A program made the position numbers and the translations under genes. The notes below the pieces were generated by a model. That model was given only the letters and a program-made list of their open reading frames with translations. It ran no database searches and was not told the DNA's origin. Of a DNA stretch of 64,000 nucleotides, positions 4,140 to 45,647 are shown one piece after another. The stretch's first letter is position 1. Each line of letters starts with the position of its first letter. Source of the stretch: Takakia lepidozioides (lineage: Eukaryota; Plantae; Bryophyta); contig CM060731.1 of the NCBI GenBank assembly GCA_030704615.1, positions 63,364,001 through 63,428,000 of the forward strand, written 5' to 3'.

Positions 4140-4670
4140 AGAGCATATAGGACTAAAACGCATAACATGTCGACAAGAGAATTTTCCAACTTCATCCCTG
4201 GTGCAATTCCAGTCTTCTCAATTTCGGCATGGACCTCTTTGCCCTTTTCCAGGGCTCCTAGGGTGGCAGAAGCATTCAGGATGAATGTGACCTAGTTGGG
4301 TATCACCCCTTCCAGTATCATTTGCTCATAGATCTCCATAGCCTCCCTACCATACCCATGTTGAGCATATCCCGTGATCATGGCGTTCCAAGATATTGTC
4401 AAACACCTTGCGCGCTTCCTTAACACTTTTACATTTAGCATACATCACAGTAAGGGCAGTCTCCATAATGATATCTGACCCAATTCTAGCTTTGATGATG
4501 TCAGCATGTACCTCTTAATACTTTCCTGTTGCCACATTGGTAACATTTCAAAATCCCCACCATACCATAGATCCACCAACGAGCTAACTTGCAGAATTCA
4601 ACATGAAAATTTAGGGACGACACTGATAAGAGGGGAAAACAGGCTGAAATGTGTTGAAGAAGGTACTTCA
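4140..4670 (-). pseudogene. PLS-PPR pseudogene fragment joined to an intron/acceptor paralogous to the PDF-motif locus at 58.2 kb
   Basis: Minus strand encodes broken VHADIIKA / MYAKC / ARKVFD / [12 protein letters not shown] motifs; 4515-4670 aligns with 58165-58330. Confidence 0.75.
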
Positions 4671-15008: not shown

Positions 15009-15412
15009 TGCTTTTGGGCTGATTAGCACACCCCTTGGGACACTTATTTGTATTATCAAGAACCGTCGCGTGTGGGGGGACTTCCACTTCACAACCAAGT
15101 TTATCTCAAAGATTGTTGGGCGAGCAGTTGTTGTAAGGGATGCCAGCTGCTTTCACCATTTTCAAGGTGGGGGAGCAGCAAAAGGAATTTTCTCTTTGCC
15201 TCCACAGTGAGAAGCTGGCCATTGGTTTTGGGCTAATAAGCATAACACCTGGGACGCCTCTCCATCTCATCAAGAATCTTCGGGTGTGTGGTGACTGCCA
15301 TGCCTCCACCAAATTCATCTAAAAGATTGTTGACCGAGCAATTGTTGTACGGGACACTAACCGCTTTCACCATTTCGAAGATGGGGTTTGTTCTTGTGGG
15401 GATTACTGGTGA
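15009..15412 (+). pseudogene. two tandem DYW-domain fragments without PPR array
   Basis: 15009-15165: AFGLISTP...[19 protein letters not shown] (frameshifted); 15166-15412: [11 protein letters not shown]...CGDCH..TKFI*KIV...CSCGDYW with an in-frame TAA at 15320. Confidence 0.85.
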
Positions 15413-15862
15413 GAAGATGTTTTTCTGGAAAGGTGCGAGTGTCTTGCTTCATTCATTGATCTGTGCAGCTACTCAATTCATCCACCATTTCCTGAGAATA
15501 TTGACCGTGATGCACTGTTGAGGGCATTAATGTGTTGCATCCACAGGAAATTACCCAGCATAAGTGGTATCACAGCTCTGACTTTGTTTCAACAAAAACA
15601 CCAGTTGTATCCAACCAGTTCTCAATTTCTATACCTTGAAGCCACGTACAGTTGATCTCATTCCAAAAGCTCAAAGGAGGGAGCTGTCCACTTGATTATT
15701 TCAACAGGGAAAAATCAACTCTAGCGTAAGACACTCCTCTGCTCACCATCACAGGGATTCATGTCAGTTCAAGCCCAGTATAAACCTGACTATAACTCTA
15801 TTTACAGTTTGAACACTCTAGGTAGAGAAGGCATCACGTTCAGAACTCACCACTCATCTCTA

Positions 15863-15888
15863 AACACTATTTTAATTAATTTTTGACT
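15863..15888 (+). repeat. left terminal inverted repeat
   Basis: Reverse complement of 34699-34724 with 3 mismatches. Confidence 0.85.
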
Positions 15889-16279
15889 AAACTTAATATA
15901 TATTTGTATTAAAATTAATTGAAATATTAATAATATCATGGTGTAATGTGTGATTGAACTTTGTGAAATTTCAGATGATGTCATACTTGTTTCAAAATGT
16001 GTCATATAAGAGGTCCATTTGACATTGAAGTGCTCAATGTGAATTGGCAGTATTGAACAATTCATTGAACGTCCACTTGGAAGTCGAATAAAGTAAAATT
16101 CCATTGCAGGATCATGATAAACAAATGGGTCGCATCGAACATGGCCAAACTCGTACTCTACCATACTCGATACAACTTGCTAGTAATTTTATTGATTCAA
16201 GAATCTTCATATGAAGCACAATGTTCACATACCACACCATTGGAATGAATCATGTTTTGGATCTAACAAGGCAGTAAAA

Positions 16280-17990
16280 TATTAGAATAGCATGAAACAT
16301 TCGGAAGAGGTACAAGGGTAGTACAATAAGGTTTGGGGTGTAATTAGAGAGAAGTGTAATAAGGTTTGGGTTTACAGTAAGGGTAAGGGTTTAGGGTTTG
16401 GATTTAGGGTACAAAAAGATAAACAAATATGATGGACTCACATTCGGTAGAATTAAGAAATGGTTGAGGAATTTGCTATCCCTGTAATCATTCTATCATA
16501 CCTTATCCAACAAAAGAAAATATTAAAATAGCATGAAACATTGAGAAGCGGTAACATGGTAGTACAATAAGGTTTGGAGTGTAACTAGGGTAGTACACTA
16601 AAGTTATTGGTTTATGGTAAGATTAATGGTTTAGGGGTGATGGTAAAGGTAGGGTTTTCGGTTTGGGTTTAAGAACACTATTGGACAAACAAATATGGAA
16701 GACTCACAGTTGCTAGAACTTGGTGAGTGTTAGTAGGATAAATAAAATAAAATAAAATGGAGAAACAAATATTATGGAAGAGTCATTGGGCCGGAGAAGT
16801 ATTTAGATTGAGGATTCGTCTTGGAACCTGGTATTAAGATACATATGGTTATGGTATGGATACTTAATTCCCATTTGCAGGGGAAGGGTAAGGGTTTAGA
16901 CGTAACAATGGCGTAGGGTTTTGTTTAGGGTTCTCGACGAGGGTTTAGGGTTTGGGTTGAAGGCAGAAATGGTGAGCATACATGTCGGAAGACCCGCACT
17001 CGCTACAACTTAGTGTTGTTAGTAAGGTAGTAGTACGCAAAATAAAAATGAAGAACCTAATATTATGAAAGTGTAGTCATTGCATCGGACAAGTATTTAA
17101 ATAAAAGACTCGTCATTGGAACCTAGTATTAAGATACATAGAAAGCAAAGTTCGATAAAAAATGTAAGTGCATGTCAATCCAAACCAAAGGCAAAACCTT
17201 GCGCAAGGTGAAGGGCGAAGAGATTTGAATAACCATAAATAGTTATGGTTATGGTATGGATACTTCATTCCCAGTTGCAGGGGAAGGGTAAGGGTTTAGA
17301 CGTAACAATGGCGTAGGGTTTTCCTTAGGGTTTTCGACGAGGGTTTAGGGCTTGGGTTGAAGGCAGAAATGGTGAGCATACATGCCGGAAGACTCGCACT
17401 CGCTATAACTTAGTGTGTGTTAGTATGGTACAAAATGGAAATTTGTTTACATTGAAGAGATTTGGATAACTAAAATGGTTATGGTTATGGTATGGATAGT
17501 TGATTCTCATTTGCAAAGGGAAGGGAAAAGGTTATGGGGTATTGGGTTAAGAGTAAATGTTTAGGGTTTTCTAGTAAGGGTTTAGGGTAAGGGTTTAGGG
17601 TTTTTGTTTAAGTTACAAAATAGACAAACACTTATGGAAAACTCCAGACTTCGCTAGAACTTAGTGTTGTTAATAGGGTACTAGTAAGCAAAAAAAAATG
17701 AAGAACCTAATTATGGACAAGTATTTAAATGAAAGACTCGTCGTTGGAACCTGGACCTAGTATTAAGATGTAACATAGAAAGCAAATTGTAACATGCCTA
17801 AATGCATGTCAATCCAAAACAAAGGAAAAAGCTAGTGCAAATATGAAGGGAGAAGACATTTCAATAACCATAATGGTTATGGTTATGGCTACGGTTATGG
17901 TATGAATAGTTCATGGGCCATTTGCAGAAAAGGGTAAGGGTTAGGGGTAATGCTAACATGAAAAGCAAGGTATTATAAATCCTAAATCCT
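16280..17990 (+). repeat. subterminal array of degenerate duplicated blocks rich in telomere-like GGGTTTAGGG/GGTTAT motifs
   Basis: Near-identical blocks (e.g. ~16845-17030 vs ~17245-17430); TTTAGGG-type motifs near 16390, 16894, 16924, 16944, 17294, 17344, 17560-17600; A-run 17999-18024. Confidence 0.8.
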
Positions 17991-18758
17991 AAATTGCCAA
18001 AAAAAAAAAAAAAAAAAAAAAAAACATTATGAGATTTGGAAAGAAAATGGCGTTATATAACGACTTTTGGGAAGCGCCTGGATCTCATGGGAGAAAATGG
18101 ATCTGAAGAAGACATGAGAGAGGATAAAAAGTCAGACCACCAAATAAAAACTATGAGAAATAAAAATTGCTTAAAATTTGAACAACGGAAAAGGACATGT
18201 GAAATTCCCTCTTAAACCAGGGCCAAAGATGAGAAATATGAAAATGAAATGAAATGAAAATTTGGTGGAGAAAAGTCGTAGAGCTTAGAGGGAAAATGGA
18301 GGAAAACCTCAAAGAAAAAACTTCAGAACTGGCAAATTGAAAAATATGTCAACAACGATTGAGTAAGGCTCCTCCTAGTGGGAGACTTCAATGGGAGAAT
18401 TGGTTATGCGAAAAGCAAGTCCAATGTTTCAGAGAAGGACTAGAAATAGGCTATTTTCTTCCGTTGTTAAAAACCTCTTTGACCGAATTTGAAGTCTCCA
18501 GTGGTCGTGCCCGCCCATTTTGTTCTTGTGATCTATATGTTATGTAGGCGAAACTCTCCCACAGGGTATTTTTTGTTGACCAGGACGTACAGCAGGCCAA
18601 AATCCAGCAAACCAGAAACAAAGGACGAGAACGTCCACTGGACATTCGAGGTTCAGTGCGACATAAGAATATTGCAAAAATGATCCCCCGACGCAAACAA
18701 GAAGGGCCATATAAAGAAGAAAAATTTTATTTCTTAAATCGAAGTACTGGAGTTGACC

Positions 18759-21700
18759 TCAACAATATATCCTATTCCTTGTCGTATTTTTCCATGGAGG
18801 CATTGTCCACACAACATTGTTCACGTGGATCCATTGAGGAGGATCTGTCGAGTTATACTCCCAAAGTTTTGACCAGCAGTCCCTGTACCTTTCCAAGTCT
18901 GTTAGGTTACCACCTTTTCTCGGTCTCCACCACTCCACCTTCACCTTCTTAAAATTAGGATCATCTCTTTCGCGGATCACGTCAGATATTGCCACCCCCA
19001 TCTAGACCGGGCACGTACTTGGGTCATGAGGGCGAACGAGCACAAAGAACCATTTCTCAATATCCTTGAACGGATTCAAGGATATTCTTGGTCGCTCACA
19101 CCTCGGGCCACAGTAAGGTTCTAGGATTTCATCATTTTCTTCCACATCTGGCACTATATGTGGATGGATTCCATCTCTGTGATGATTCTTAGACCAATTT
19201 GTTTTCGGCCAGAATCCCTCAAGAAGCTGAATACGCTCGGGAGCTTCTGGAATTGGCTTATCCAGCTCGGCGAGAATATTTCCCCAGTACTGGTCGTATT
19301 GTTCCATTTGACCTTTGTAATGATCGTCAAGCATCAATCCTTTCGTCCAAAAATCCCTGTATTTTTTTATTCCATTCTTAATAAATGACTGTTTTTCGGA
19401 GGAGTCGCCCCCGACTCCCCAGATTGGTCTCATTGGAACGGCGTCTGGGTCTCCTTCAGGGAGCTTGGGAGTCCCGTCAGGATTGGACTTCCACATCTTC
19501 ACGTTATTGTTTGTTGGAAGCCAATCCGAATCAGTAGCGGACTTCTTGTACTTCATGACGGGCCAGCCCTCGGCATCATTAAAAAAACGGAAGACGTACA
19601 TCTCCGAAATCCCGACCAACGCCTCCTTTCCATCCAGAATACAGCCCTTGACAAATTCTTGAAGTCGGGAACCTCCTGAATAATCAACTACGGATCTTGC
19701 GAGGTCATGAATGACCTCATCAAATCCGAAAGAATGTAGGTGCTTCGTTCCTTCAGCTTCTTCGAAAGGTAGCTGAAGAACCCGTCGATGTCCTCATGGG
19801 TGTGTCCGACCATTAAGAACCCTAGTTGGATTTCTTCAAAAACATCTTTGGCGGTCAGGAGGGATACAAAAGCAAGCATCCATCTATTCTTATTGTCCTT
19901 CGCGGAGTTTTCCATTTGCAAGTACAGTCTTCTCGGAAGTGGACGAGCACCACGTTTGTCTTCCGGCCTACAGGGTTTCAGAGCATCCAAACATCTCGAT
20001 TTACCTCTTAAAAGTGATTCGAAAAACTCGTTTTGAAGTCGGTAATCGAAAATGTTCCTGGACTCGCGACAAGTTGGCTTCTCCAGCTGGCGAGCTTCCA
20101 ATGAGGGGTTTTTACAACCTGCAGAGTGGGCCCATGGTGGCCGAACAAGCAATGACAAAGGGGGCTCAAACAGTGTGCATTGCCGCAAAGAACCAATTGT
20201 AAAGTTTGAATTTCCCTTCCAGAACTCAAGAGAATACTGTCTGTAAGCTCCATCACTGTGTCCATGCGTGACCATTCCCGTTAGTGAAACTGGAAGCTGA
20301 CCCAATCCAGAAATCATCTTGTTTGGAGTCTTTAGCCTTGGAACAGCTGTTTTCCTATGATCCATTTTGTCGTGAATAATACAGAGAAACTCCTCCGGAA
20401 TCATAACAGACTCATTCCTCTAGCTATGGTACATTCTTCTGCACGACTCTTGGTGCCTCAAATGTTTATCAAGAGCTCATTTGTGTGTCACCTGTTCCGC
20501 ACTTCTCTTGACAGACTTTCTGATAAGGTCCTTTAATATCTCACACTCCGTGCACTTCGCAAATATACTCCCAGTTTTACGAACCTCCACGTTAGAAAAT
20601 ATCCGACGCCGGATGCGGCTAACAGCCAACTGCGAGACTCCTTCCAACCCGAATAGTCTGTTGGACTGTTACAATAAGGCAGGGTCAAGAAAGGAACGTC
20701 CACTGGACAGTGGAGGTTCAGGAAACTAGAACCACAGTCGAAAGAGACAAAATCAAGGGGATGATTATCCAAATTGAATCAGAAAAGACTTCCAGGAAAG
20801 AAATTGAAGAATGGAGATTTCATACCTCGTTGGACTCGTCTCGTATTCGCTTCCAGTTCATTTCAGGTGGTAAGACTCTCAAAGTATCCCTCCTTCCCTC
20901 CCTAATGCATCTTGTCTTATGGGGCATGAGGTCAATATTTCCGTTGATAATGGACATAATGTTACCCTATGCCTGAAGTGTCCTTGGGCGTGGCCTCTTC
21001 ACTCCACGGTTCCCATGGAGACTTGACAACCAACCCTGTTTACTCAACTTTTTGTACTCCATGTATGTGGACCTGCCAATTCCATGAATTTTTCACCAAG
21101 CAGTCTCACAAACATCCACACCCTCAATCGTAACGTATGCCCTGCGACAGGTCCCTTCCAGCATGTGAAGTCGTTTTGAAACATTTAGTCCGTGTTCTCT
21201 CCTCTCATCGACAGTGAATCCCCAAAACGAAGTACGGATAGCCAAGGTTTTTCGCCAATCAAAATATTGACAGTAGTGAAGTCTGCAGCAAGGTTTGCTG
21301 CTCACGGACCGGACTTCCTCCAGAGTAAGATTCTTCATTCTTTTTTTGGAGTGTTCCAAATCTCAATCCCTCTTCTTCCTCGTAAAATGCCGATACGCCG
21401 CTTTCTTCACACCCGCCTCGTGATCCTCGTACAAGATGCCGTCGGAGGATCTAATAAAATTCTCCACATCATTTGAGAGTAGTCTCCCACTTTCCAAAAA
21501 TCGTGTTTTTGTTAAAGGCCATTTTACAAGAGACATCAAAGATCCAGAACCTCCAGAAAGTATTCTGGTGACAAGAACTCCAACATCGTCCTTTCCCAGT
21601 TTGTCATTGAGGATCACCTTGTCCGGATTGCAGGCTTGAATCCTCCCCTCGAACAATGCACCCCCATCATCACCCAACAGTACGCACTGCAAGTTTCTCC

Positions 21701-22117
21701 AGTTGTTTCTTCCGAGTCCTCCCCTCGGATTCCCGGAACTCTTCGATGGTCTGTGGTTTGATTCATCCTCGTCGACGTCAGAATTCTCGGCAGTATCCCT
21801 TGTCTCTAGCATAAAATCAGGATTCATGTCAGGCCCTCCTTGATACTCGTTATTCTCCGCATGAACTTCGCCAACATTCCACACCACCGGGGTCCCAATT
21901 GCCTCCTTCAAGGTGTCAGCATCCATATGTCCATAAGGAAGAGGACATAATGAGTGTGCTTCATCATAGGAGATGAGAACCACTGAAATGGTTGATGAAG
22001 ATAATTGGTGTCCATGAAGGTCCCAACACCGGAGACATTAAGGCAGTCCCCAGTGGCTACTGGAGATGAAGACCCGGGAAGAGTAAGAAACACTCTTTGA
22101 CCCATCTCTAAGCTCAT
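18759..22117 (-). pseudogene. Sola1-like (DUF7869-type) DDD transposase, multi-exon, disrupted
   Basis: KPCC..YC..F...R.SFW...TIEGVDVCETAW; FAKCTECE; CIIHDKMD; LYLQMENSAKDNKN; FLMVGHTHEDIDGFFS; C-terminal FVLVRP...KVKVEWWRP; several stops and frameshifts; intron ~20667-20824. Confidence 0.8.
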
Positions 22118-22799
22118 GATCACCAGAACCTCCACTGCACACGTGAGGTTCAAGAAACTGAAAACCCCTCCGTGACGACCTTACTTACAGTAATAAGCAG
22201 TATGAGTTAAGATTATATTCAGAGATGAATCAATACAATAAAAGGAAATACACTCGCGTATGAACGTTTCAGAGAAGTAGAATAGAAATGGAATTACTGT
22301 CTGGTCTGGAACATGTCATATGAAGATTGTGTCTAACTATATAACCTCCACTGTACAGTGGAGGTTGGATGAGATAATAATGAAAAAAGTCGGATGGATG
22401 AATACTAGTGGATGAACATGGTTACGTGGATGAATAATGGTAATGACGGATGAATGTGAGCATTGACGCGACTGTCTAGTGGAGGTCCACAACTTGAGGT
22501 ATGACGAAATACAGAAATTGAAGAGTATTGGACTGTAACTTCTAAACATGCAGATGAGAAATAAGTAGATTTTCCTGTAGAGTATCGAAAACACACAGAT
22601 GTCATAACATTTTCTACGGGAGAAAATGCAGTTCACACGAGAGATTATGGAAATTCAGAGAGGTACACCTATGATGGCCACAGAGGTACAGGATGCTCAG
22701 AGAGGTGCACTATGGGAAGTGAGGTGGGAGATGACCAGAGAGGTGCGGGAAACACAATCTGCAAGTGAGAGATATGGAGATAGAAATTTGAACAGTTTG

Positions 22800-23390
22800 T
22801 ACTCAGACCTTATATAGAGGTGGAAACCAGATTGCCCGCTGGAACTCCTCCAATGGGATAGTGCAATAGATTGTCTTGCGGATCAATTTCCGTCGCCGCT
22901 GATATCCGATATGGCCACAATCGAACGGTTCTGGATGGTGCAGGAGTGCACTCTTTGACCGATTTCGGAAAAGAGTGTCATTTACTGGTAGATCCCTATG
23001 TAACAATTATGATGCCAGAACGATAACGGTGGTTCAATGGTTTCGCACTCGTGCTTATCAAGTAGTACGTATTTCACATTCAATGTTGTCCAAGTGGATG
23101 AAGGCCTGACGCCGATGACAAGCGTTTCATGAATTCGTGCAGCTATGACACTCGGCCGAGAATGCGGCAGGCGTAAATGAGTGACAGAGGAAATATTCCA
23201 AGCCTTAATCCGCCGAATGTAGACATGGTCAGGAGCAATAATTCCCAGCGGCAAAACGCCGCAGGAGGATCTGACTTGTACATTTCATTTATCGTCACGT
23301 GTGGGATGTGGGAAATATCACGTGGGGTTATAATTGATGATCTTGTGCAAAGGATCATTAACGTCATATTTTCTCGTTCATTCATCTGTT
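22800..23390 (-). pseudogene. degraded unknown cargo ORF within the transposon
   Basis: Coding-like composition and broken ORFs (22982-23254 and neighbours); no recognised motif. Confidence 0.3.
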
Positions 23391-24437
23391 TATTTATTCA
23401 TTTCATCTAATCATTCGTAAAATGGATGGACAGAATGGAAATGATGAATGGGATGATATTTGCATGGATGTTAGATGGAACACGCGCGACCGTTCGATTT
23501 CGAAAGGACGCAATGGTTCAGATCCTTTGCAACGGCACCATATAAGGGGTGTGGTCGTTCAGCCCACCCTTTCGCCACTCCATTGTGTACGCGGAAGCGC
23601 TGCGGAAGTAGTATGACCGACTAGCGCTAGAAAACAGAGAGTTTTGAAGGGGAGAGAGCGTGAAGAGCAGAGAGCGTGTTGTGCAGGGTTCCATGGGAGC
23701 TGAGAGAAGAGAGCGTGCAGTTCAGTGCAGCGTGAGAGTGCAGTGGAGGAAAGGAAGCATTCAGCGGAGTCAAGTGCAGACAGGAGACGGGAGGGAATGT
23801 TGATTTGCTTTTGTTTTTGTTTTGCTGCTGCTATTGTTGGTCAGCATCGCCCACGTCGCTGTTGGTTTGCTTCTCTTTCTCACTCACTTTCGTTCCAGAG
23901 GTTATAGAGCACCATTTGTTTCTTGCATGTCACGTTTCGTGAGTGTGTTGTCTTGTCTGTTGCGGAGCATCTCATTTCAATTCATGTGGTTCCAAAGCTG
24001 TTTCAATTAGTTTGAATTGATTAAAGCTGTTTAGGTGTTTCAATGCATTGCTGCTTCTCTGCTGGTGGTTTGCATGGTGGTTTGTAAGGGTGGTTGGTAT
24101 GGGTGGTTTGTGGTCCTGGTTTACTGGTGCTGCTGGATTATTAGGGTTATGGATTAGGGTTATGGCGGGTTAGGATCATGGTTTTTTGCGATTGTTTTTC
24201 CGAATTTCCGACATTTGAAAACGGGTTTTTCTTCGGGCCTAGGCTACTCTAGTAGACTAGTCTCCGTAGACCACTAGACCTCTAGTAGACCTCCATAAAC
24301 TCTGGCAGGACAAACCACACGAACCTCGCCTGCCCAGTGGAGGTTCCTACGTGTTTCTATGCCAAGGCACAACATGAGGATGTATTGAGATAGACTTATG
24401 TCGGTGCCTCCCCTGCGTTGATTTTTTGTTTTGTCAG

Positions 24438-25045
24438 TATAAAAAGAAGGGGCGTAGGGGTGCACACGGTGGCCAAAGATGGTTCTGAGACCGTCGTCGA
24501 CATCTGTAAGAGGCCAAGGAGACAGAATCCAGTAAGCATCAACGAAGCAGAAAACCAAGACGCATCACTGGTTGTATCGAAAACAAAAACCTTCCAGAAG
24601 AGATCTGAGAATGAAATATCAGATGTGGGCTCTGACGTGCGAACCTTCATAAATCCGGGCACTGACGAATCAATGTTCGAGGGACTTATTTGACGGGAGA
24701 CAACGGAAGAAACAGAGGAAGAGAAAGATGAAAGTGATGAGTGCAATCTTCAGTGTGATTCAGATAATGACATTTATGTAGGAGATAGTGAATAGTACCC
24801 GGGATCTGTCCTTCCGTCCACTCCCGGATACAGTCCTCACTCTCCTCAGTATGCAGTATCTGTCCTTGTAAATTCTCTAGAATATGTCCCTGCAGATTCT
24901 CCTCAGTACGTCCCTGGACATTCTCCAGAATACATCTCTGGAGATTCTCCGACATATACCCCTAGAGAGTACTCCCCTAAAACCTTGAGGATGATTCGAG
25001 AGACCTCCTCTAGTTATTATAGATATAAGAAAATGAAAAGATGAA
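24438..25045 (+). pseudogene. cargo exon: acidic stretch followed by Y/S/P-rich repeats (Pol II CTD-like)
   Basis: Frame of ORF 24418 continues through two stops to PGYSPHSPQY...EYVPADSPQYVPGHSPEYISGDSPTYTPREYSPK. Confidence 0.55.
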
Positions 25046-25235
25046 CCTCATCTTACAAAAGAATATCGAGTTCTTGTAGATATTGGGTATTCGTTATTCG
25101 AACAATTTTGAGACTGCATGATGTATTGAATGGCGAGACGAGCCTTCTCTGAATAAATGTTTTTTTCTTCTTATGAGTGATATCTTTTTTTCTCCTGAAT
25201 TGGATTCTTTTATCTGTCAGCTATGAGCATGTGAA

Positions 25236-28200
25236 GTGGTGAACCTCCACTGGACAGTGGAGGTTACTGTCCTGGGAATTTTGTATGGTTGTTATGATAT
25301 GCGTCTGACGACAGAGGTGGTTTGTTCTGTGCATAGCAACATCACCCCCAGGGATTGTATTGTTGGAATGTGCAAACCTATCTGTGGTTCTTTTGTTTCT
25401 CGAAAATCTCTGAATTTCAAGAATGATCACCTGGCAATTTTTGAGCTCAACCCGGAGATCACAGAATGGGGCATTGTACCCGTTGGCACACCTCCGGACC
25501 ATAAGTTCCGGTTCCAATACAAGATTGGTGCAGAGGTCGCCGAGCTCAAATATGCAGATGTGGTCGACGTAGAGCTGGAGATGGAGGTAAATTTCCGATG
25601 CTGGTAATGTTCATAATGGAAGATGGTAGATTTCCCATAACATTTGGCTTCAAACTGGAGGTACAAATTCTAAGGAAGGCCATGATGAGAGAGTCCATCA
25701 GGGCGGGGTTCACATATTGCGACGAGGGTATTCAATTTATAGATGAAGGATTTTGCATGGCTTGGGGTATTTTCTTGGATGTGCTTTACCTAAAGGGTAA
25801 GGAGATTGAAAAGACCTGGGAGGAGGAGGCTGCAAGAGGGAGGCCAAAGAAGGGAAAACGGAAATCCATTGACGCCGGTGGTGATGAGAATGAAGTCGGG
25901 ACATCAGGGGGAATGAAGAAACAAAAGGAGGAGACGGATCCCGAGTTCATGACAAATAACAAGAAACCCAAGGCTGCAAACATATTCGACAAAGAGAAGT
26001 GTGAGAAGATGCAGGAGAGGCTGGAGCAAGACTACAAGGACATGTTTCCTTTTGGGTTTGAGGCGACCCAGGACGTCAAAGTTTCCATGATGGAGCTTGC
26101 TCCCAGGGATAAGGTGTACAGGCCCCTAAATGTGAAGCACAAAGACGAAGTCAAAGCGCGTCTTTACCAGCTCCGGGTGTTCGACTCCAAACATCCAGTT
26201 TATTTGATTCTCGTAAACCCCGAGAAGCCTATGGAGGTTTCTAATTCGAAACCTCGAAACTGGAACGAGGTGGAAAATTCCAGATTCTTCGTCATCGGTG
26301 GACAACACACGATCATTGCTGCCAAGGTATATTTCTCAACAAATTCCAATTTTTGTAACAACATGAACCTCCACTGGACAGTGGAGGTTCATGAACTTTA
26401 ACCAACATGCTTGTTAGGTCGATATCATTTCTGACCTTATTCAATTTTGTCGCAGGAACTTGTGCAAGACGTAGACGACGACAATCTTAAGAAGTACTAC
26501 ACTGACTGGCCCTCAAAGATTATATGGTCAAAGGATCTGATGAGGCTCGTGAAGGTATCTAAGCTCCTAAATGACCCGAATAAGGTGCAGAAATTTGACA
26601 CAACATTTCCCGAGAAAGTTGCACATGCCCGAAATTTCTTCGAGCTGAGGGGGAGGCCGAAAAAGTACAACGATCACACAACGAAGTCGGAGACTAGACA
26701 ATGGAAGGTAAATGATTCATTGTGTTTTCTGTTCCTTTTGCTAGAGAACCAAATATTTTCAAGCTCGGATTTAATGTGACGAACGGAGACCGCATTGCGA
26801 AGCACCGCATTACGAAACATGATACACTACAAAAATAGCCTCATAAGGGAGGGTGCTACAATGAACGAGCGGGATGGTTCAACATTCGGAAATTTGACAT
26901 GATGGGGTCTTTTGTAATGTGTCTTGTTTGGTAATGAGGTGCTTGTCCAGCTCTTATTTTCCCAATCTATTTATGTTCTCCATTTGTAACAGTTCTGCAA
27001 ATGTGCCGCAAAAATACTTGAAACATCATATGATCATGAAAACGTGATGTGGCGGAGAACGCTTCCAAAACTTTTCATGCTCATTGGGTTTTTCAAGGAT
27101 TTTCTAGGTACACTCTTGGAACTGTTCCTGCTAGAGAACATGAACAGATTGGACAAATTTGACTTGGAGGAGCACCGCATTCCGAAGCAAGAGCCACTAC
27201 AGAAAGAGCTTCAAATTACAAGGCACAACAAGATGGACGGAGATGAATTGGCAATCGAATCATCATTTGGAGTATAGTATAATTGACATGATAGTTGTGA
27301 CTATTGTTTCATCTCAAAAATTAATATCAAATATCGAATGAAATGTCTAACTTTCGCTCTGATTATTTTCGCATGAATTTATGCAAGCATGTCAACTCGT
27401 ACTGGAGATGAGTAGCGTGAAGGAGGCCATGGTTCTGGTTCTCTGTGACGTATGGAACCTGTGGGAGGACGTTTTCAAACAGTGGGAACAAGGGAAGCTT
27501 ATTGATATTTTCGGGATTCAGTGCAAGGGTGAACAGCTACCGCTGTATAAAACCGCTATCGCGAAACTGCAAGGACTTAATAGCAGGCAGTTGAAAAGAG
27601 TGGCGGAGAAAATCCTAAACAGAGACATTTGCATTCGGGGAACGAAATTCAAGGGCGCGGACAAATCCAAAAACACAATAAGCACGTATATTGACCAAAT
27701 GAAATTGCGACGGTTTATTATCGACGATGTAATGGAAGTCTTAGGGTGGCCTCGGAGGAGCAAACAAAACCCGGAACCGTATACCAAACAGGAGTGGCGT
27801 GATGTGAAAAAAAAATAAAACTTCAACAAAGCTGAGTTTGAAACTTTTCGAGATCGGATCGGGAACGACTACATTGTAAGCAAACAGAAGATGAATATGG
27901 AGACGTAGCCAATGACTGCTGCCTTCAAGAAGTATGTCTTGTCGTGCAAGCAGACCTTCGAGGATAACCAGAACGCCCTAGCGATTCTACGCACGAGCTT
28001 CAGGTCCATTACACATAGTTGGGGGGAAACCAAAAATTTGCTGATACCAGATCACGGTTGGGACTTGCACCGAAGAAACGGTTCGACGACATATCCATGG
28101 TGTTTGTCAATACAGTTTGTGATGATGACTCTGTCGTCTTCGAGGCAAATGACTACTCCAATATCCTGGATGCTTTTGTGGCTCGGAAGCTAATGTCCAG

Positions 28201-28963
28201 TGCATTTGTGTTTTTCTCGACACAAGAATCATCGGGAAATCTTGTGTCATACATCCGGAATGGTCCTGGATCAAAATCGTTTATTATCCGACAGGGTTAT
28301 TACATTCCCGGCGAGTTTGAATCACCTTACAAGAGCTGCACGACTATTTTCTCCCGAACGGTCCTCTGCCTCGACTACGTATTTCCGGCAATAGATGAGG
28401 AGATGGTGAATCCGGACGATCACATTCAAACTGTTTTGTTAACGCCGGACCCAATTAATCCCGTTATCCAAAGACCAGTTGTAGACCCGACCTCGCAGGA
28501 GAAGGAGTGCAGGACTTACACTCATGAGCTGAGGGCGGACATCTACGATTACCTAGTTTTTTTTTTTTGCAGGGACGGAATGTCTTGTGAGAACATGGAA
28601 ATCGTCAACGGAGACCAGGGGCAGATGCGGCTAATGTGGGAAAGAGAAAGAGAGGGCCAGGAAAAATACCGGTTGGATAATCTAGGTAGTACTCCAAATA
28701 CTCAAGAACGCGTTGCACCAGAAGATGTACACAATCTGGACAACTCTTCCTCCAATTCCGATAACACCACGAATAAGAATCCGGCTTCTCCAGGGGAACA
28801 AGAAACGACATCGACGGAGTTAGTTGAAACCCTTGGTCAAGGCTTCAAACCTGTGGAAGGTGACGAGCCATTGATTATGTCACCGGATCTCGTTAACAAT
28901 CGTCGTGAGCTGGTGTCCCAGAATGTCACCCAGGAAGTGGTTCTGGATGTAGGTAACGAATGA
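25236..28963 (+). pseudogene. large multi-exon cargo gene with a ParB/sulfiredoxin-like domain, disrupted
   Basis: VKVSMMELAP...YRPLNVKHKDEVK...PVYLILV...FFVIGGQHTIIAAK (~26070-26326), followed by GT-AG introns and further helical exons (26456-26708, 27381-28963) with frameshifts. Confidence 0.6.
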
Positions 28964-29939
28964 CAATTAGTGAATTTTTATTCGTACACACTTCTGAATA
29001 CAATATGACAATATTGTAATTATACATAATCCCAATTTTTTTCCATATCCGTTTTTCTGGACTTCCGAATAAAACATATTTCCACCCGGACACATATTTC
29101 CGTTCGCACACCTTTGTGGACAACCACTAACCGATATGGATAACTTTTCTTGTAGATCCAAGAATCCCAATCGGAGGAAATGACGCACACAAGAAAAGGC
29201 TCAAAGGAGACTCAAACGGTGAAGAGACACGTGGATCTGACAGTGAGGGCCATGTCACCTGAGCCGGTTCCGCAAGTAACCTCCACTGTCCAGTGGACGT
29301 TGCTATCTGTAGGGAATGAGTCGGAGAATCCTCCTACTCGCTGGGAGGGAGAAGAGACAGAGCAGCACAAGCACGTAATCCAACAACAGATCCTGATTCG
29401 GGTAAAACATTTTCTTTATTCTTATTTCATATTATTGGTCTTTCAGTCTCATCTTCGGTATTACTCAATTCAGTAATTTTGTCGGATCAATTTGGACCAT
29501 CATAATCCTCATCCGTGGGATTCTTTAATTTCCTGTAGATTCGTGAAACGACGTCTGAGGAGATCAAATACACGAGGACCGACTCCATCGACACTGAGAC
29601 GGTGAAGAGAAGAATGGATCGAACAATCACTGTCGCTCTATCTGAGCCGGTCATACAAGTTACCTCCACTGGACAGTCGAGGTTGCCATTTGGTGCCACA
29701 GAGAAGGATGATAACGTTTGCCGTAGAGATGGGAAAGAGGAAGAGCAGCCTGCCCAGGTATCTCAGGAGCCGCCCCAAAAAATGGTAATGATTTCAACTC
29801 CATTCTTTTGTTTGTCTACATTGGGATTTCTGAAATTGAAATTAATAATGAACTCTTCTGTTATTCCACAAGACAACATGCATTACCCTCCAGTCGACTA
29901 TTCCCTTTCTGTCAATCCAAACGATCTGCATTCCTTCCT

Positions 29940-30740
29940 TGGGGACCGAACGGGTGTCGGCCAGGATACTACGTCCTGGTTCTGGACATCGGTTACCTTT
30001 GTGAGGTTTTCCTAAAGGATGGAAAGAAAACCCCTCCTGCCACCCAGCCTTGTATCTCCGCAGGGAAATTCAAGTTAGCTACGCGAAACGGTCTTGACGA
30101 ATTCGTTAAGTGGGCCGTCAAAATGTTTGTCGTTTGTTTTTGGAACACTGGACCTGAAATGAACGTCGAGACTATCGCCAAGGCCGTGTTCGGGAAGTAC
30201 TATTCCTAGGTCAGAACTTACAGCAGTGAGAATTCCGTCATGCATAGATCGACATTCAACGAAAAATGGCCCAAAGCTCCCAAAAATCCCATCTACTTTA
30301 AACGTCTTTACGACATTTTCGCTGAGGAAGACCCGACAGCTTACAAATCCAATACTCTCCTCATCGACACTGTAGACAATATGTACAACACACACGTGAA
30401 AGATATGGTACTTTCATTTTGACTCATTTTTCAGATGAATGCTTGACGCACATTCTGGGCAATCCTACTTGAACCCGTTAGGACATACCATCTTCCTTCC
30501 AAAATATAACGCGCGCGTGGACCCTGATAGAGATAAATTTATACTGGAAGAGCTCAAGCCTCACCTTAACATGTTCAGGTTATCGGGGATGGATGTCATG
30601 TCATTCAACGAGCTACATCCTTTCGGCATTACGAAGGATTTCTTTGAGGACGACCCAGCGGTCAAATTTCTTAGAGACTTTGATTATAGGTGGCAGAAGT
30701 TCCTTAGCAATCACGAGTTGCGTGCCACTACATTGGGACA
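29940..30740 (+). pseudogene. FCP1/NIF-family HAD phosphatase-like domain, copy 1
   Basis: VLVLDIGYLC...TRNGLDEFVKWAVKMFVVCFWN...YFKRL...NTLLIDT...SYLNPLGHTIFLPKY; internal stop at 30207. Confidence 0.7.
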
Positions 30741-30873
30741 TAAAATATTTTCATTGAGTTTGGTGATCATCGGCTGTCCAGTGGACGTTCTGGTTCACTT
30801 GCCCGGTGTCGGTTTTTCCAATGCATTGTACTGTTCCCTTTTATCATCCTAAGTATGAATGACTCTCTGGCAG

Positions 30874-31605
30874 ATTGGAGCTCCTGTTTCTCCTCCTGCG
30901 CAAAGGTTGCGTTTGATTATTTTTGACGTGAATGGAGTCTTGTGCAAAATCTTGAAGCACCAGAAGAGCTACAATGTCCCCCGGTTTTCAGAATCGGACT
31001 ACAGAATTCCAGCTCTTGTCGGATTCTGACTTGTCTTTAGACGGGAGAAATATTGCGAAGTGTAGATAGAGTTGCACAAACACTTCCGGTTAGGGATTTG
31101 GAGCTCTATGATATACAAGAACTTGCAGCCCATCCTAGATTTTTTGCTTCGTGGTCTACCTCAACCGGCCTTCGTTATGTCTCAAGAGGATTGTATTTCA
31201 TGTCCTACTTCGGTTCACCCTCAATTCAAATCAGGATTGGACCCTCCTCATTTGTTTTTGAAGCCACTGGTCAAGGTCTGGTAGAGTTTTGGTGGACAAT
31301 ATACCAAGAGTAACACTCTGCTCATTGATGACACCGCCATGAAGTGTGTGTTGAACCCGCCCGACTCATGTCTTATTCTCAAACCGTTCCAAACCGTGGA
31401 GACTGATGGTTGCTATCTTCTCAAGGTTCTTCAGACCTATTTGCTTGGAATGAGGAAACATCCCACTGTTTCAAGCTATCTTAAGAAAAAAATGATAGGG
31501 TTGAGTTTTTTTCCAAATGTTTTAAACTATCCCAAGTTTAGCCCACTCTGGGATTTTATTGAGGACAACGGTTTTAAGAGTATCAGATATGATGCTTTAA
31601 CATAA
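30874..31605 (+). pseudogene. FCP1/NIF-family HAD phosphatase-like domain, copy 2
   Basis: LIIFDVNGVLC...FRLGIWSSM...FLKPLVKVW...TLLIDDTAMKCVLNPP...ILKPF; stops and frameshifts. Confidence 0.78.
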
Positions 31606-33039
31606 ATTATTTTTTATCAATCTCATCTCACTCGAGCTATTGAATATCTTCATGGTTTCTGTTTTTCATTTCCTTGTAAGACTCCGATACAGGCCTTCAT
31701 ACGGGGACATTACTATATCTAGTGACCTCCACTGTTCAGTGGAGGTTCACATTCGCGCACTCCCGGATTTATGATTATGTCTCTTTGGCAGGTTCAAGGA
31801 GATGCTGACGACATCATCGGTTCCTCAAGTCCCGTAAATGAATCCTCCGGATCAGCAGTGAGTCGGAGTATTGAAGGCTTTCCGAGGGTTCACGATGGTG
31901 CTCAAATTGAGGGTGGATCTTCTGTCAGACCCTTGTCCTCCCAGGAAGCTGGCGACACTCTTCTCCTCTCGGGTCTTCCTGGGTGTAAAGTCCAAGGTGC
32001 AGGTGAAGAACACAAATATCCCGGAAACTTTATCGACCTTTCCCAACATTCCTCACCCTCCCTGTTCAGTACGCAGGGTCTGGTCTATCCAACTCGCAGG
32101 GCAATCGTCGGGGACTCGGCTACGGCTCCACTGCACCTGCTTCCGTCTCTTCCTCGCATATCTTCCCAGCACGAGGGTTGGACAGCCCAAATCTGCAAGA
32201 GTTAGACGACTTAAACTCATTTCTCGCTCCTTGCTCATTCTCCTAGTTTCACTTAGTTTGGGGTCTGATATTCATCTATCGCTCCAGGTAAGAAAATCTG
32301 CAGATTATGACCTTCCTGTCAAACGACGTCTGCATTGGAATGCAGTTCCAAGGTAAAGTATTCATTCGTTGCGTTTTCATTCCATCCAGGATGTCGAGTG
32401 CTCAAGGGATAATTTTCTGTGCTTGCCTGTTGTTGCCCCTCCACTCCTCCCGTCATTCAATGGAAAAACATCTCCAACATCGACATAACGTGACCCTGAA
32501 CTGCTTGCACAATGTTCTGCACCAAAGAGGCGAAAAAGAGCCCCCGAGCCATTTCCTTCCTCTGCAGGAAATCTTTCCAACGGACAAAAGGCTGACAAGA
32601 AAAAAAGAGTGGACGCCAAACACTTGAGGACTCCCTCGGATGTTGTGGCGCCTCGTCAATCCAAGCCCGCGGGAATCCACTGTTCTTCTGCAAGACATTC
32701 CAATAAGGCTTCAATGGTACATTTCAAAACAATTTCTCCACTTTCGTTTGCAGTTTGTTTTGTTGTCCCAAACTAACTCCGTAACTTTTATACAAGCGAG
32801 TATGGAGCTGCATAACTTCTTGAATGCGCCTCCCGACAAGGTGCGTCCACTAACCTCCACTTGACAGCTGACGTTCATCTTTTCGTGATCTCGAACTCTT
32901 CGATATATGGTCTACTCTTGGTCCTTTACAGTAGTCCATTGTCAGGACACTTATGTCTCCGAAAACGTAGAGGTCACTCTGAAACTAAGAAACACTACAT
33001 CGTGTTGTTTCTGACGGCGGGAACACTTAAATTGCGCAG

Positions 33040-33765
33040 GATGGCATCATCCATCAACCTTCATTTGCCACATCAGGGAAGAGGAAACGGATGTTGTTAA
33101 TATTGAGTGTCAACGGACTCCTCTGCTACAGGCCACCTCCAACCGGCGGTGAACTGTTTAAGGAGAGATTTCGTTTCAAGAAAGTTATAGTTTATGTTCC
33201 CGACAAACCTTTTGTGGTTCCCCGGCCCGGAGTCTTGGAGTTTCTCAACCTTGCATTCATGCATTTTCACGTGGCGATCTGGTCATGTGCTGAAAGAGAT
33301 GTTCTTTGTAGGATGCTCGAGTGCTTAGTTCCTACGAAAATTGCGAAGAAGTTTTGCTTCATCTGGTCAGCTGAGGATTGCAAAGACACTATAGGTTACA
33401 TCATGCCTCGGATGAAATATCTAGTTAAGGATGTTCGCACTGTTCTTGCCAAGTACCCTGGTACACCCTTTGCAACGTAGGGACAAATACTCCTTGTCGA
33501 TGATGAGCCATCAAAGGGCCTCCGAAACCCACCAAATACTGGATTCTTCCATATTTCATACAAGCCATCACCAAAGGGCTTGGTTGACCTGGATGATATG
33601 ACAAAAGTTGTGTGGCCATATATATTGAAAATGGCTGCAGCTTCAACAGTCGTAGATTACATCAGCGAGAGCCCTGCCAAGTGTTCTCGTAAGCCTATTG
33701 GTCGCGACCATGCCTATTGGGCTTGGTATGGAAGATATGTTGATCCTCGTGTTTGGATCCCATAA
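33040..33765 (+). pseudogene. FCP1/NIF-family HAD phosphatase-like domain, copy 3
   Basis: LLILSVNGLLCYR...PRPGVLEFLNLAFMHFHVAIWSCA...FIWSAEDC...LVKDV...ILLVDDEPSKGLRNPPNT; stop at 33478. Confidence 0.8.
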
Positions 33766-34698
33766 CAAAAGGAACCTGATTACCTTGGTATGTACTTATC
33801 CCACTGTTTGTTGTTTATAGAGAATTTGATCTTGAAAGTGTCTTCCACTTGCACTTTGACTTCATCATTTTTTCTACAAATGTTCCACATTTCAGCTGAC
33901 ATTTGTCATATGAAAAATTGTTTTGCCCAGTCACATTCAAGGACCGAATTCGAAAAGAAGAAGAAGAGCTTCATGATTGGCAAGAATGGCGGGCTTCCCG
34001 GCAGGCTTCAAGGGCATCAAGAGATTCAACAAGTAGAGTTCCAAGTAATATTTTCGGATAATAATGTTACTACTAGGTTCGAGTTCTCCGAAAGTATTTC
34101 CGTTTCCTCTGGTGCGGAGACTGTTGCAAGTGGTTGTGGTAACCGGAGGCATCTTCGAACACATGCCTTGACTGCGAGCCGTTTGGGATGAGGCTCTGTA
34201 ATATTAATGGGTTAGTGTAAGCCGTTATATGGCTTCGAGCCGCTGGATAACATTAAGTCCAACGGATGTACAGTTGACGTTACATTATGTGTGACTGCAA
34301 CGCCAAAGTTGCAATCTCTAATAAAATATGAATGTTTATCAACAATGTATGGAGACTTATTCTTTCATGTCATCTTTTTCATCACATGCCATGATTGTTC
34401 TATGTTTGGTTTTGTATGTCATCTGATATGGCAACCATTTTGTGCAAAAAGTTTTACATATCTGACCTCACATCATGGTGTAATTTATTGCATCTCCCAT
34501 GATTTTTTTCATGAACGTCAACTTGGCAGTGGATGTTCTTCTAGAACCACAATACATACTTATATTGTCTCCAAAAACTGTTTGGATGATTATTGTTCAT
34601 GGTTATATTGTGCATAAAATAGCCAAAAATATATCGCTTTATTTCAATAATAAATTTTGTTTATTCATATTTCTCATATTATTTCTGGACCGAACAAA

Positions 34699-34724
34699 AG
34701 TCCAGAATTAGTTAAAATAGTGTT
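34699..34724 (-). repeat. right terminal inverted repeat
   Basis: Pairs with 15863-15888; followed by TCTA. Confidence 0.85.
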
Positions 34725-34823
34725 TCTACCTTATCTATTCCCAACAGCACAGTACCGGATTACTCCTCCGGTCCACCCAACCGCCACACCATGCTATATT
34801 CTCATCTCCTCTATGCATATATG

Positions 34824-35538
34824 TGAGAAATTTCGCCAAGATCGCGGGGCCGCTGTCAGACCTTCTGTGTAAATCCAAAGTCTGGGTATGGAAAACCTTT
34901 TGTGGCCAAGCTTTTGCCGAGTTGAAGCAGCGGACGGCGGAAGCTCCAGTCCTCAAAATCCCGGAGTTCGACCATCTATTTGAGATTCATACGGATGCAT
35001 CGGACTTCGCAATAGGGGGTGTACTCATGCAGGATGAACGTCCAGTGGCTTACAAAAATAAGAAACTGAATGAAGTGGAGCGACGGTGGCCTACGCATGA
35101 GAAGGAAATGAAGGCGGAGGTGCATTGCCTTGAGCTTTGGCACCACTATGTTGGTTCCAACCCGGTGAAGGTGTTCACGAACAATGTCACGGTGAAGTAT
35201 TTTGCCACACAGCCTAAGTTGTCCACAAAACAACTTAGGTGGCAAGATACTTTGGCGGTGTTTGACGTGGATATCTAGTACAAACCGGGACGGGACAATG
35301 TGGTGGCCAATGCTTTAAGTAGAAAACAGCAGCTCATGTTGGTGTACAGGGGCGAGACAGCGCTCCAAAGGAAGATCCGGAAGGCTTACCGGAAGGATGA
35401 GATGGCGAAGTCCGTGATGCGGGACTTGAGGATGGGGGTTAAATCACAGTTCCACTTGCAAAATGGACTGCTCCAGTATAAGCAAAAGCGTCTTTACGTG
35501 CCGAAGGGAGGGATCAGAGATAGTCTCTTGAGAGAATG
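34824..35538 (+). pseudogene. Ty3/gypsy pol fragment (RT connection, RNase H, start of integrase)
   Basis: NFAKIAGPLSDLL...APVLKIP...FEIHTDASDFAIGGVLMQ...WPTHEKEM...KPGRDNVVANALSR...RLYVP. Confidence 0.9.
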
Positions 35539-42468: not shown

Positions 42469-45400
42469 GCCAAGCAATGGGCATAGGACGGCTCTGGCAG
42501 CAATTCTTCTCAGACCCTTCACAGTGGTGGGACAACAGGTTCCACAAGGTGAGGCTATCTTCATTTAGGATGTGAAGAGATGTTATGATGGTTTGTGACT
42601 GAAGCTGGCATGATGTAGTTTGGTTGGATTGCATCTTCAGTTGCTCAGATTATGAAGTAAATATCTGCATGTTCTCACTATATTATTTGTCCTGCCTTTC
42701 AAGCCTTGGGTGTGTCTAGTGAAAAATCTCAATGTTGGTATAAAGAAAGTTGTTCTTCCTTGTTGGCAGGACATGAAGCAGGATAATCAAGTTTATTCCC
42801 TCTTATATGAAAGATGCTTTGGTGGCTTTAGCCGGGTCTATGCGAGGCTGTGGTTGAAGCTGTGCCTGCTCAGCTGCCCACTGGTGGTTTTCACAGAGAA
42901 GTCCAAGCTCACCGGACTTCAGACATAAGCGCACAAAGGAGGCCCTTTGGATGGAGAGTTGGTCAAACCCTCCCTGGGTGAAAGCAGAGCTGGCTGCCAT
43001 GGTACAACGTCAAGCACAATGTGGTGATGTGAGGACACTATGTAAGGCAGGGAGACTGAAAGAGGCCCTGTGTATTTTAAACCAAGTAGACACTTTTGCA
43101 GACTCCAATACATATGCTTGTCTCTTGCAGGTTTGCATCAACAGGCAAGGCCTAGCAGAGGGAAAGCAGGTGCATGCTCACATCATCCAAAGTGGGTTCA
43201 AGCCAAACATCTTTCTACTCAACACCCTTGTAAACATGTATGCAAAGTGCGGGAGTGTGGTGGCTGCACGCCAAGTGTTTGATGAAATGCCTGAACATGA
43301 TATGGTTACGTGGAATATAATGATAGCAGGATATGCAAAGCATGGATGTGGTAGGGATGCCATTGGGATCTATGAGCAAATGATACAGGAAGGGGTGTTA
43401 CCCGACAGGGTCACATTTATTTGTGTTCTCAAAGCATGTGCTAGTCAGGCAGCCCTGGAAAAGGGCATAACGGTCCACTCTGATATGCTCAAATCTGGAA
43501 TTGAGATAGACATCACTCTAGAGAATACCCTTGTCGACATGTATGCCAAATGTGGGAGCTTAAGGATATCGCGTCAGGTGTTCGACAATATGGCTAAGCG
43601 AGATGTGGTGTCATGGAATGCAATGGTCACAGGATATGTTCTGAATGGTTGTGAGAGGGAGGCTTTCGAGATGTATGAGCAAATGATCCAGGAAGAAGTG
43701 ACACCCAATGAGGTCACTTTCATTTGCCTTCTCAAGGTGTGTGCCAGTGTGGCAGCCCTGACTAAGGGCATAAAGGTTCACGCTGCCATCATCAAAGCTG
43801 GAATTACACCAGATATCATTTTGGAAAGTACCCTTGTTGACATGTATGCAAAATGCGGGAGCATAACTGATGCGCGTCGAGTGTTTGACACAATGGCTAG
43901 ACGAGACGTAGTGTCTTGGAATGTGATGATAGCAGGATATGGTCAGCATGGATGCACTAGGGAGAGCCTCGAACTATTTGAAGAAATGCAACAGGAAGGC
44001 TTGAAGCCGACTGTGGCCTCATGGAACGCGATGATCACAGGATACGCCCAGCATGGAGCTGGTAGGGATGCTTTGGAGATGTATGGGAAAATGATACAAG
44101 AAGGGGTGACGCCTGACAGTGTCACATACATTTCTGTCCTCAATGCATGTGCCAGCCTGGCAGCACTGGAGGAGGGAAAAGTGGTCCATGCTGACATTAT
44201 CAAAGCTGGAATTGCACGGGATGTCATACTGGATACTGCCCTTGCTGACATGTATGCTAAATGCGGGAGCATGAAGGATGCACGCCAAGTGTTTGACAAT
44301 ATGGGTCAACGAAATGTGGTCTCATGGAACGCAATGATTGCAGGATATTTTCAACATGGGTGTGCTAGGGACGCCCCGCAACTATTGAAACAAATGCAAC
44401 AGGAAGGCCTGAAGCCGGATGTGGTCTCATGGAATGCCATGATCGCAGGATATGCTCAGCATGGGTGTGAAGGGGAGGCTTTGGCAACATATGGGCAAAT
44501 GATCGGGGAGGGGGTGGCACCGGACAAGGTCACATTTATTTGCATTCTCAATGCGTGTGCCAGCCTGGCAGCCCTGGAGAAGGGCCGAGAGGTCCATGCT
44601 GACGTCATCAGATGTGGAGTTGTGGCGGATGTCATTCTGGAGACTGCCCTTGCTGATATGTATGCCAAATGCGGGAGCATGAAGGATGCACGTCAAGTGT
44701 TTGACAATATGAGACAACAAAATGTGGTCACATGGAGTGCGATGATTGCTGGGTATGCTCGGCATGGGGGTGGTAGGGAGGCCCTCCAACTATTTGAACA
44801 AATGCAACAGGGAGGCTTGAAGCCAAATGGTATCACCTTTATATGTGTCCTCTCTGCATGTAGCCATATGGGTCTAGTGAATGAAGGGTATTACTACTTT
44901 AATTCCATGATCCAAGATCATGGCCTTACCCCTACAGTGGAGCATTTTGGCTGCATGGTAGACCTTCTTGGTCGTGCAGGGCGGTTGGAGGAGGCGGAGG
45001 AATTCATTAACGAAATGTCAATTGAACCAGATACTTCAGTGTGGGGGGCCTTACTTGGTGCATGCAGAATTCATGGCAATGTGGCGGTAGCTGAACGTGC
45101 AACAAAATGCCTTCTCAAGTTGGATCCAGGGCAAGCTGCAACATATGTACTACTATCGAACATCTATGCCGCTGCTGGCAGGTGGTATGACACAGCAAAG
45201 GTGAGAAAAATGATGGAGGTCAGAGGTGTCAGAAAGGTGCCGGGGCACAGCTGCATTGATGTGAAAAAACAGGTCCATACATTCGTTGTAGATGACAAAA
45301 TGCACCCACAAATTGAGGAAATTCATGCTGAGCTGAAGAGATTGTCTGGGCCACTGAAGAAAGCTGGGTATGTGCCTGACACTCGCTTCATATTGCATGA

Positions 45401-45647
45401 TGTGGAGGAGGATCAAAAAGGGTTTTGTCTTTGCTACCACAGTGAGAAGCTGGCCATTGCCTTTGGGCTGATCAGCACACCCCCTGGGACAACTCTCCGC
45501 ATCATCAAGAACCTTCGGATGTGTGGTGACTGCCACACGGCCACCAAGTTCATCACAATGGTTGTTGGGCGAGCAGTCGTTGTTCGGGATGCCAACCGCT
45601 TTCACCACTTCCAAGATGGGGGTTGTTCCTGCGGAGATTACTGGTGA
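42469..45647 (+). CDS. PLS-class PPR-E-DYW RNA editing factor with N-terminal OSB-type PDF motif; exons 42469-42548 and 42897-45647 (plus a probable upstream exon)
   Basis: 898-aa ORF of P-L-S repeats, E domain, PG box [31 protein letters not shown]; upstream GT-AG exons give LWQQFFSDPSQWWDNRFHK|RSPSSPDFRHKRTKEALW in frame. Confidence 0.93.

Follow-up and report, generated by a model that had tools for sequence, protein, structure and literature searches.

A decayed 18.9-kb Sola1-type element with a ParB/methylase-like accessory gene, NIF-like domains and a private palindrome in Takakia lepidozioides

Results

The DNA studied here is a 64,000-nucleotide stretch of contig CM060731.1 of Takakia lepidozioides (assembly GCA_030704615.1, positions 63,364,001 to 63,428,000), called the window below; coordinates are those of the window unless a relative is named. 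It contains an 18.9-kb element at 15863-34724. The ends of the element are terminal inverted repeats (TIRs) of 26 bp, which match at 23 of 26 positions and lie at 15863-15888 (plus strand, first letters AAC) and 34699-34724 (minus strand). A direct repeat, TCTA, stands on both flanks (15859-15862 and 34725-34728) as a 4-bp target site duplication (TSD). Between the ends are a transposase gene on the minus strand and, on the plus strand, an intron-containing accessory gene, three NIF/FCP1-like domains and a small open reading frame (ORF) with a repeat resembling the C-terminal domain (CTD) of RNA polymerase II. One palindrome recurs through all of these modules.

To evaluate the ends, we accepted every pair of 26-bp inverted repeats that surrounds the transposase and is flanked by a 4-bp direct repeat, and 100 block shuffles served as the control. 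None of the 100 shuffles gave a TIR and TSD pair of equal quality, and the only other qualifying pairs in the real window were formed by two inverted PPR paralogues. The nearest relative in the transposase tree, L001 (52% transposase identity), is a complete element of 10,759 bp (L001 2151-12909), with 26-bp TIRs matching at 25 of 26 positions and the TSD CAAG. The TIR core of L001, also found in the left TIR of the window element, is identical to that of the right TIR at 16 of 18 positions, a match that was equalled in 2 of 200 shuffles. Thus, the homologous TIR core and the 4-bp TSD of L001 give independent support to the ends in the window. The bases adjoining each TIR are also complementary, so that the ends can formally also be read as 27-bp TIRs with a 2-bp duplication, CT. 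The 4-bp TSD is preferred because the 2-bp reading requires a 1-in-16 chance match of the flanks here and again in L001.

The ends might instead be chance matches, or might belong to another element, for instance one of the Helentron type with a 2-bp duplication, in which the transposase is nested. The TIR is AT-rich, it has three mismatches, and a hairpin with an 8-bp stem (34683-34707) overlaps the right TIR on its inner side. One end of L001, downstream of the transposase, bears this hairpin too, whereas the hairpin-bearing end is upstream of the transposase in the window. However, the shuffles and the ends of L001 speak against this explanation, as does the absence of a Helentron Rep/helicase gene from Pfam scans of the window, and we regard it as most improbable. 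An earlier note on this DNA had placed the TIRs and the TCTA flanks where we find them and had called the boundaries intact; the ends are indeed complete, but every gene inside them is broken. It had also considered that the interior might resolve into independent nested elements, and our search inside the element found no other transposase, no reverse transcriptase and no internal set of TIR and TSD. The sequence is almost certainly a real single element, and its assignment to Sola1 is very probable.

The transposase gene (18700-22040, minus strand, about 1100 residues) matches DUF7869 (Pfam search, E = 5e-34), and a structural model was made of the relative P0170. Full-length relatives of 940-1280 residues, the named ones from Ceratodon purpureus and Riccia sorocarpa, align over 22040-18700. 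The motifs IIHDKMD, LQMENSAKDNKN and GHTHEDID, from which the earlier note had recognised a transposase on this strand, are all found. The order of domains is two N-terminal SH3/Tudor-like domains of the DUF8039 type, zinc-type Cys/His motifs, the DUF7869 RNase H core and a C-terminal beta barrel. The catalytic aspartates (D524, D667 and D709 in P0170 numbering) vary little or not at all among 63 sequences. In the P0170 model (predicted local distance difference test, pLDDT, 85), the first of them is placed on strand 1, the second behind strand 4 and the third in the helix that comes next, within a core with a predicted RNase H fold, with Z = 8.8-9.3 against integrases and Mos1. In the window copy, the second aspartate is replaced by E, a private change, and the gene is interrupted by seven or more stops and a frameshift near 19665, with an 81-nt in-frame insertion near 20090-20186; this copy is therefore dead. 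A GT-AG intron at 20666-20825 (minus strand) encloses a copy of the palindrome, and palindromes also lie in an intron of L001 at the corresponding position. The P0170 model (residues 1-200 and 945-1030) indicates that plant DUF7869 transposases have tandem N-terminal barrels like those of Tudor, Agenet and KOW domains (Z = 6.2-6.8), with weak Foldseek matches to readers of H3K9me. These predicted barrels are a possible chromatin-reading module.

The accessory gene (25224-28960, plus strand, with introns) is collinear with a gene of Riccia sorocarpa that joins a ParB-like and a methylase-like part; the spliced gene models were searched exon by exon. Three parts are discerned: a ParB/Srx-like core with the motif IGGQHT (about 25985-26326), a helical domain (27363-27815) and a degenerate methylase-like region (28019-28660). 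The ParB-like exon and the helical exon match the Riccia gene with E = 2e-8 and 3e-6. The methylase-like region aligns collinearly, but with E = 0.79, and its S-adenosylmethionine-binding motif is unrecognisable. The leading atlas hits of the ParB-like exon were DUF3723, DUF6551 and ParB_N, with scores of 0.86-0.91. The ParB-like domain of the earlier note is thus supported by the motif and by weak matches, but not by a profile or fold match, and we consider the ParB-like identity no more than suggestive. A ParA-like ORF, for the ATPase of bacterial parABS systems, was not found in Pfam scans of the window. The C-terminal end of the Riccia gene resembles an N6/N4 methylase (Pfam N6_N4_Mtase, E about 1e-3; M.RsrI, E = 0.004; both below the cut-off but consistent), and is plausibly active. 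Riccia has more than 100 paralogues of this gene, many of them annotated as NIF fusions.

The palindrome is 24 bp long, AACCTCCACTG-nn-CAGTGGAGGTT, and occurs in 13 copies with at most five mismatches, where none would be expected by chance. The copies start at 18630, 20695, 22127, 22343, 24322, 25242, 26366, 29278, 29661, 30766, 31724, 32852 and 34514. All of them lie within 18630-34537, with none elsewhere in the 64 kb, which agrees with the statement of the earlier note that one private palindrome runs throughout the cargo. They are placed mostly in introns, untranslated regions and intergenic DNA. The Riccia loci each have a palindrome of their own, of 22 bp and in 13-37 copies. Four loci were checked beyond the ends as well, and there the 20-37 copies are all internal. 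In one count, 36 of 37 copies lie outside coding exons, though 43% of the element is coding. A scan of metagenome contigs with the palindrome gave no match.

Downstream of the accessory gene are three NIF/FCP1-like domains, all on the plus strand: NIF1 at 29943-30730, with the motif LVLDIGY and broken by a 74-nt piece (30389-30463); NIF2 at 30871-31600, with IIFDVNG and several private stops; and NIF3 at 33088-33765, with LILSVNG and a private stop at 33478. The three domains reported by the earlier note are confirmed by Pfam (E = 0.004, 0.048 and 1.7e-5) and by tblastn with Riccia NIF proteins (NIF2, E = 2e-9; NIF3, E = 6e-17). The catalytic DxDx(T/V) of the FCP1/SCP CTD phosphatases is found neither in the window, which has DIGY, DVNG and SVNG, nor in Riccia, which has DVEG. 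The 74-nt piece follows 31679 in other copies and is swapped with the next 1.2 kb in the window copy. The joints of this swap (30388>30463, 31679>30389 and 30465>31678) are seen in several runs, as if a 1.29-kb circle had reopened elsewhere.

The small broken ORF at 24394-25041 (plus strand) encodes a basic/acidic stretch and a CTD-like Y-x-P-x-x-S-P repeat (24796-24968). Its period of 24 nt at 24872-24968 bears out the CTD-like repeat of the earlier note, with one heptad-like unit and four units of eight residues. This ORF was seen in the window element alone and was not found in the Riccia loci. At 29146-29692 (plus strand) are two related units of 164 bp, 67% alike, each with one palindrome and placed within low-complexity linker exons.

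Three loci of Riccia sorocarpa (L005, L009 and L011) have the same order as the window: the transposase, the divergent intron-containing gene on the opposite strand, then a NIF gene. None of the Riccia loci caught is complete with both flanks; three copies have one terminus in common with different flanks, and two have this terminus in inverted form. Since the order of genes is kept in Riccia, and Riccia has its own palindrome outside exons, the cargo appears native to the element. The Riccia and window transposases are in different clades of the tree, which argues that the cassette is old or has been exchanged between families. This tree was made with FastTree from partial rows of DUF7869 relatives only, with a midpoint root, and is read for nearest neighbours only.

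The cargo could nevertheless be neutral baggage, that is, captured fragments or nested elements that became fixed early. All genes of the window copy are broken, the Riccia copies have extra insertions, and the CTD-like ORF and the triple NIF arrangement are specific to the lineage. Against this, gene order and orientation are common to elements of different transposase clades, and the accessory protein keeps about 55% identity across two Riccia families whose introns differ. Moreover, the palindrome spans all modules, and no second set of mobile-element genes or ends was found inside the element. Neutral baggage is therefore very unlikely, and the view of the earlier note that the cargo is native rather than randomly captured is sustained. 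A fixed, element-native accessory set is supported.

Of the words in the transposase region, 30-35% are present in public DNA runs from two studies. Thousands of variant contigs, 80-99% alike, cover all 30 bins of 29300-35200 (four runs, two studies); the cargo half is high-copy. Where the window copy has stop codons, the contigs of other copies have other letters. Contigs over 34692 stop 33-34 letters on, which fits a terminus at 34724-34725. Three runs give a summed contig depth of 35,000-58,000 at 34692, much more than at most positions of the interior; this depth is not a copy number. There may be many short non-autonomous derivatives that share the right end.

The left subterminal part of the element (16270-17950) consists of G-skewed repeats with units of about 240 and 400 bp, which stop near a run of 26 A at 17999-18024. 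Plant-type telomere-like TTTAGGG motifs abound in these repeats and are possible sites for host telobox proteins. Remnants of DYW sequences (15009-15414) lie immediately to the left of the element, and a PPR remnant is found near 4165-4516 (minus strand). A very high-copy Ty3/Gypsy fragment encoding reverse transcriptase and RNase H (34820-35278) starts 95 bp to the right. Farther to the right are two intact ORFs for PPR-E-E+-DYW editing factors (42951-45647 and 48152-50638) and an intronless ORF of 862 residues with a Cupin_8/JmjC-like domain (58965-61553, minus strand, E = 4e-51). The DYW-type PPR genes, like the named transposase relatives, point to a seed-free land plant as the most likely host.

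Discussion

The earlier note knew of no description of such an architecture, but close counterparts have been published. Sola1-1_Ec32 of the brown alga Ectocarpus, reported in 2025, is 21.5 kb long and has a gene of 1104 residues for a ParB-like protein with an N4C/N6A methylase opposite the transposase; its termini are AACCG, its 4-bp TSD is biased to end in A, and its best Repbase match is the moss element Sola1-1_PPa (PMC12477816). The window element resembles it as a giant Sola1 with AAC termini, a 4-bp TSD, a divergent accessory gene and the same transposase motifs. In the stretch with the second and third catalytic residues, the two transposases are identical at 17 of 52 positions, including all motifs, in an unscored alignment made by eye. 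The TIR is 282 bp in Sola1-1_Ec32 and 26 bp here, the plant transposases carry an additional pair of SH3/Tudor-like domains at the N terminus, and the methylase part is degenerate in the window copy. NIF domains, a CTD-like repeat and dispersed palindromes are not reported for Sola1-1_Ec32 (PMC12477816).

Giant red algal Plavaka (EnSpm) elements of 17-19 kb also have ParB-like and DNA-methylase accessory genes (PAG1-3) beside inverted repeats, and these genes move among families of transposable elements (10.1101/2025.02.11.637652). Unlike the window element, Plavaka elements have a transposase of another superfamily, ParB is fused to a 2-oxoglutarate oxygenase and the methylase to SET, and the repeats are in tandem arrays rather than dispersed. 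The statement of the earlier note that Sola elements are normally a few kb long and transposase-only was too strong, since the review of the superfamily gives 2-9 kb, with some above 15 kb, and lists moss among the hosts (PMC10741241). Sola elements of plants share with the window element a DDD transposase, a 4-bp TSD and variable TIRs; accessory genes and internal palindromes are unmentioned in that review (PMC10741241). Our literature search, of incomplete coverage, found no land-plant version of such elements and none with NIF cargo or dispersed palindromes, and the term DUF7869 appeared in no paper. Relative to the papers searched, the occurrence in land plants, the NIF domains, the CTD-like repeat and the family-private palindromes are new.

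Starships of fungi are moved by a tyrosine recombinase and carry variable cargo that benefits the host. The earlier note had compared the window element with them. It is indeed a single, giant, gene-carrying and multi-copy element of Sola1 type, but the likeness is loose because the cargo is fixed and transposition depends on a DDD transposase. Pfam scans gave no tyrosine recombinase captain gene, and the DUF7869 transposase is the sole mover found.

We think it probable, if by no means certain, that the window sequence is a decayed copy of a high-copy, cut-and-paste Sola1-type family with a module for self-recognition and anti-silencing. Cut-and-paste transposition by DDD enzymes acting on TIRs is established. 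Here, the transposase would bind the 26-bp TIRs, excise the element and insert it with a 4-bp staggered cut. By analogy with VANDAL/VANC, the accessory gene would act in self-recognition and anti-silencing. A dimeric ParB-like protein would bind the family-private palindromes in introns and promoters, to which we give about an even chance, and the methylase-like part, degenerate in the window copy, would mark or shield the DNA. The NIF domains, without DxDx(T/V), would most likely be modules that bind the phosphorylated CTD, or pseudo-phosphatases, that help RNA polymerase II to transcribe the element while its chromatin is silent, and the CTD-like repeat would serve as docking site or decoy; a role of the NIF domains in transcription is itself a tentative proposal, on the doubtful side. 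VANDAL elements, which are of the Mutator group, likewise encode an accessory protein and have family-specific motifs in their noncoding parts. Their transposase and accessory protein are unrelated to those of the window element, and the function of VANC is proven, whereas that in the window is proposed only. Self-recognition with epigenetic protection of an element's own copies is proven only for VANDAL (10.1101/2025.02.11.637652).

Several results weigh against this proposal. Comparison of the joined flanks with the 64-kb window gave no paralogue across the junction, so that no empty site was found, and there is no second whole copy of the family among the sequences reached. The methylase-like region of the window has no significant similarity and no atlas score above 0.76. 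The ParB-like exon has no Pfam or NCBIfam match beside its atlas scores, a word search with it gave no match, and a fold model of the Riccia ParB region has a pLDDT of 45 and no structural match. CTP-binding ParB proteins have an arginine in their GxxR motif. In the accessory protein, GQH-T/S stands in that place. None of the RNA runs searched contains the window sequence, and so the gene models and their expression are putative. Finally, private palindromes, different in each case, also occur in L001 and in four moss-type loci, and no ParB-methylase or NIF gene was detected in the available DNA of these.

This last result bears on another explanation, in which the palindromes bind the transposase itself, for autoregulation or for pairing of ends 19 kb apart, and the accessory genes do other work. 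Every plant DUF7869 relative examined has its own private palindrome, each arm about 11 bp long. These relatives include L001 and the Ceratodon locus L004, which has nine copies directly upstream of the transposase start and no detected ParB gene. It also fits that the window element and L001 have their palindromes in the corresponding intron of the transposase gene, and the transposase is a real candidate for the palindrome binder too. However, the palindrome is unlike the TIR and has no copy in the leftmost 2.7 kb of the element, and ParB genes adjoin inverted-repeat arrays in the unrelated red algal Plavaka elements (10.1101/2025.02.11.637652). The missing ParB gene of mosses is weak evidence because the ParB-methylase profile was built from Riccia only and is insensitive, with an independent E-value of 0.002 on the window's own ParB exon, and L001 may be a deletion derivative supplied in trans. 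In the Ceratodon locus L008, a divergent ORF and an adjoining palindrome cluster (L008 2-448, minus strand, and 500-1150) lie 9.5 kb upstream of the transposase, with no Pfam match; the ORF is possibly another accessory gene. On balance, we consider binding by the transposase rather unlikely, and retain the self-recognition and anti-silencing module as the preferred reading.

More broadly, these loci may represent a widespread lineage of Sola1 elements of seed-free land plants in which ParB-like specificity co-evolves with a family-private intronic palindrome, together with a DNA methylase of bacterial type and NIF modules that bind the RNA polymerase II CTD and would sustain transcription of the element, a possibility to which we give less credence than to the reading of the window copy itself. 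If true, this would be a second, independent anti-silencing system like that of VANDAL, and a possible source of N4-methylcytosine (4mC) or N6-methyladenine (6mA) in plants. The functions of the algal ParB-methylase accessory genes are predicted ones, and the land-plant lineage gives matched pairs of protein and candidate site, with a different palindrome in each family. Many liverwort genes annotated as "FCP1 homology" or "uncharacterised" are explained as transposon cargo. Near-intact, annotated copies exist in Riccia sorocarpa, which is related to the model plant Marchantia, so the hypothesis is directly testable.

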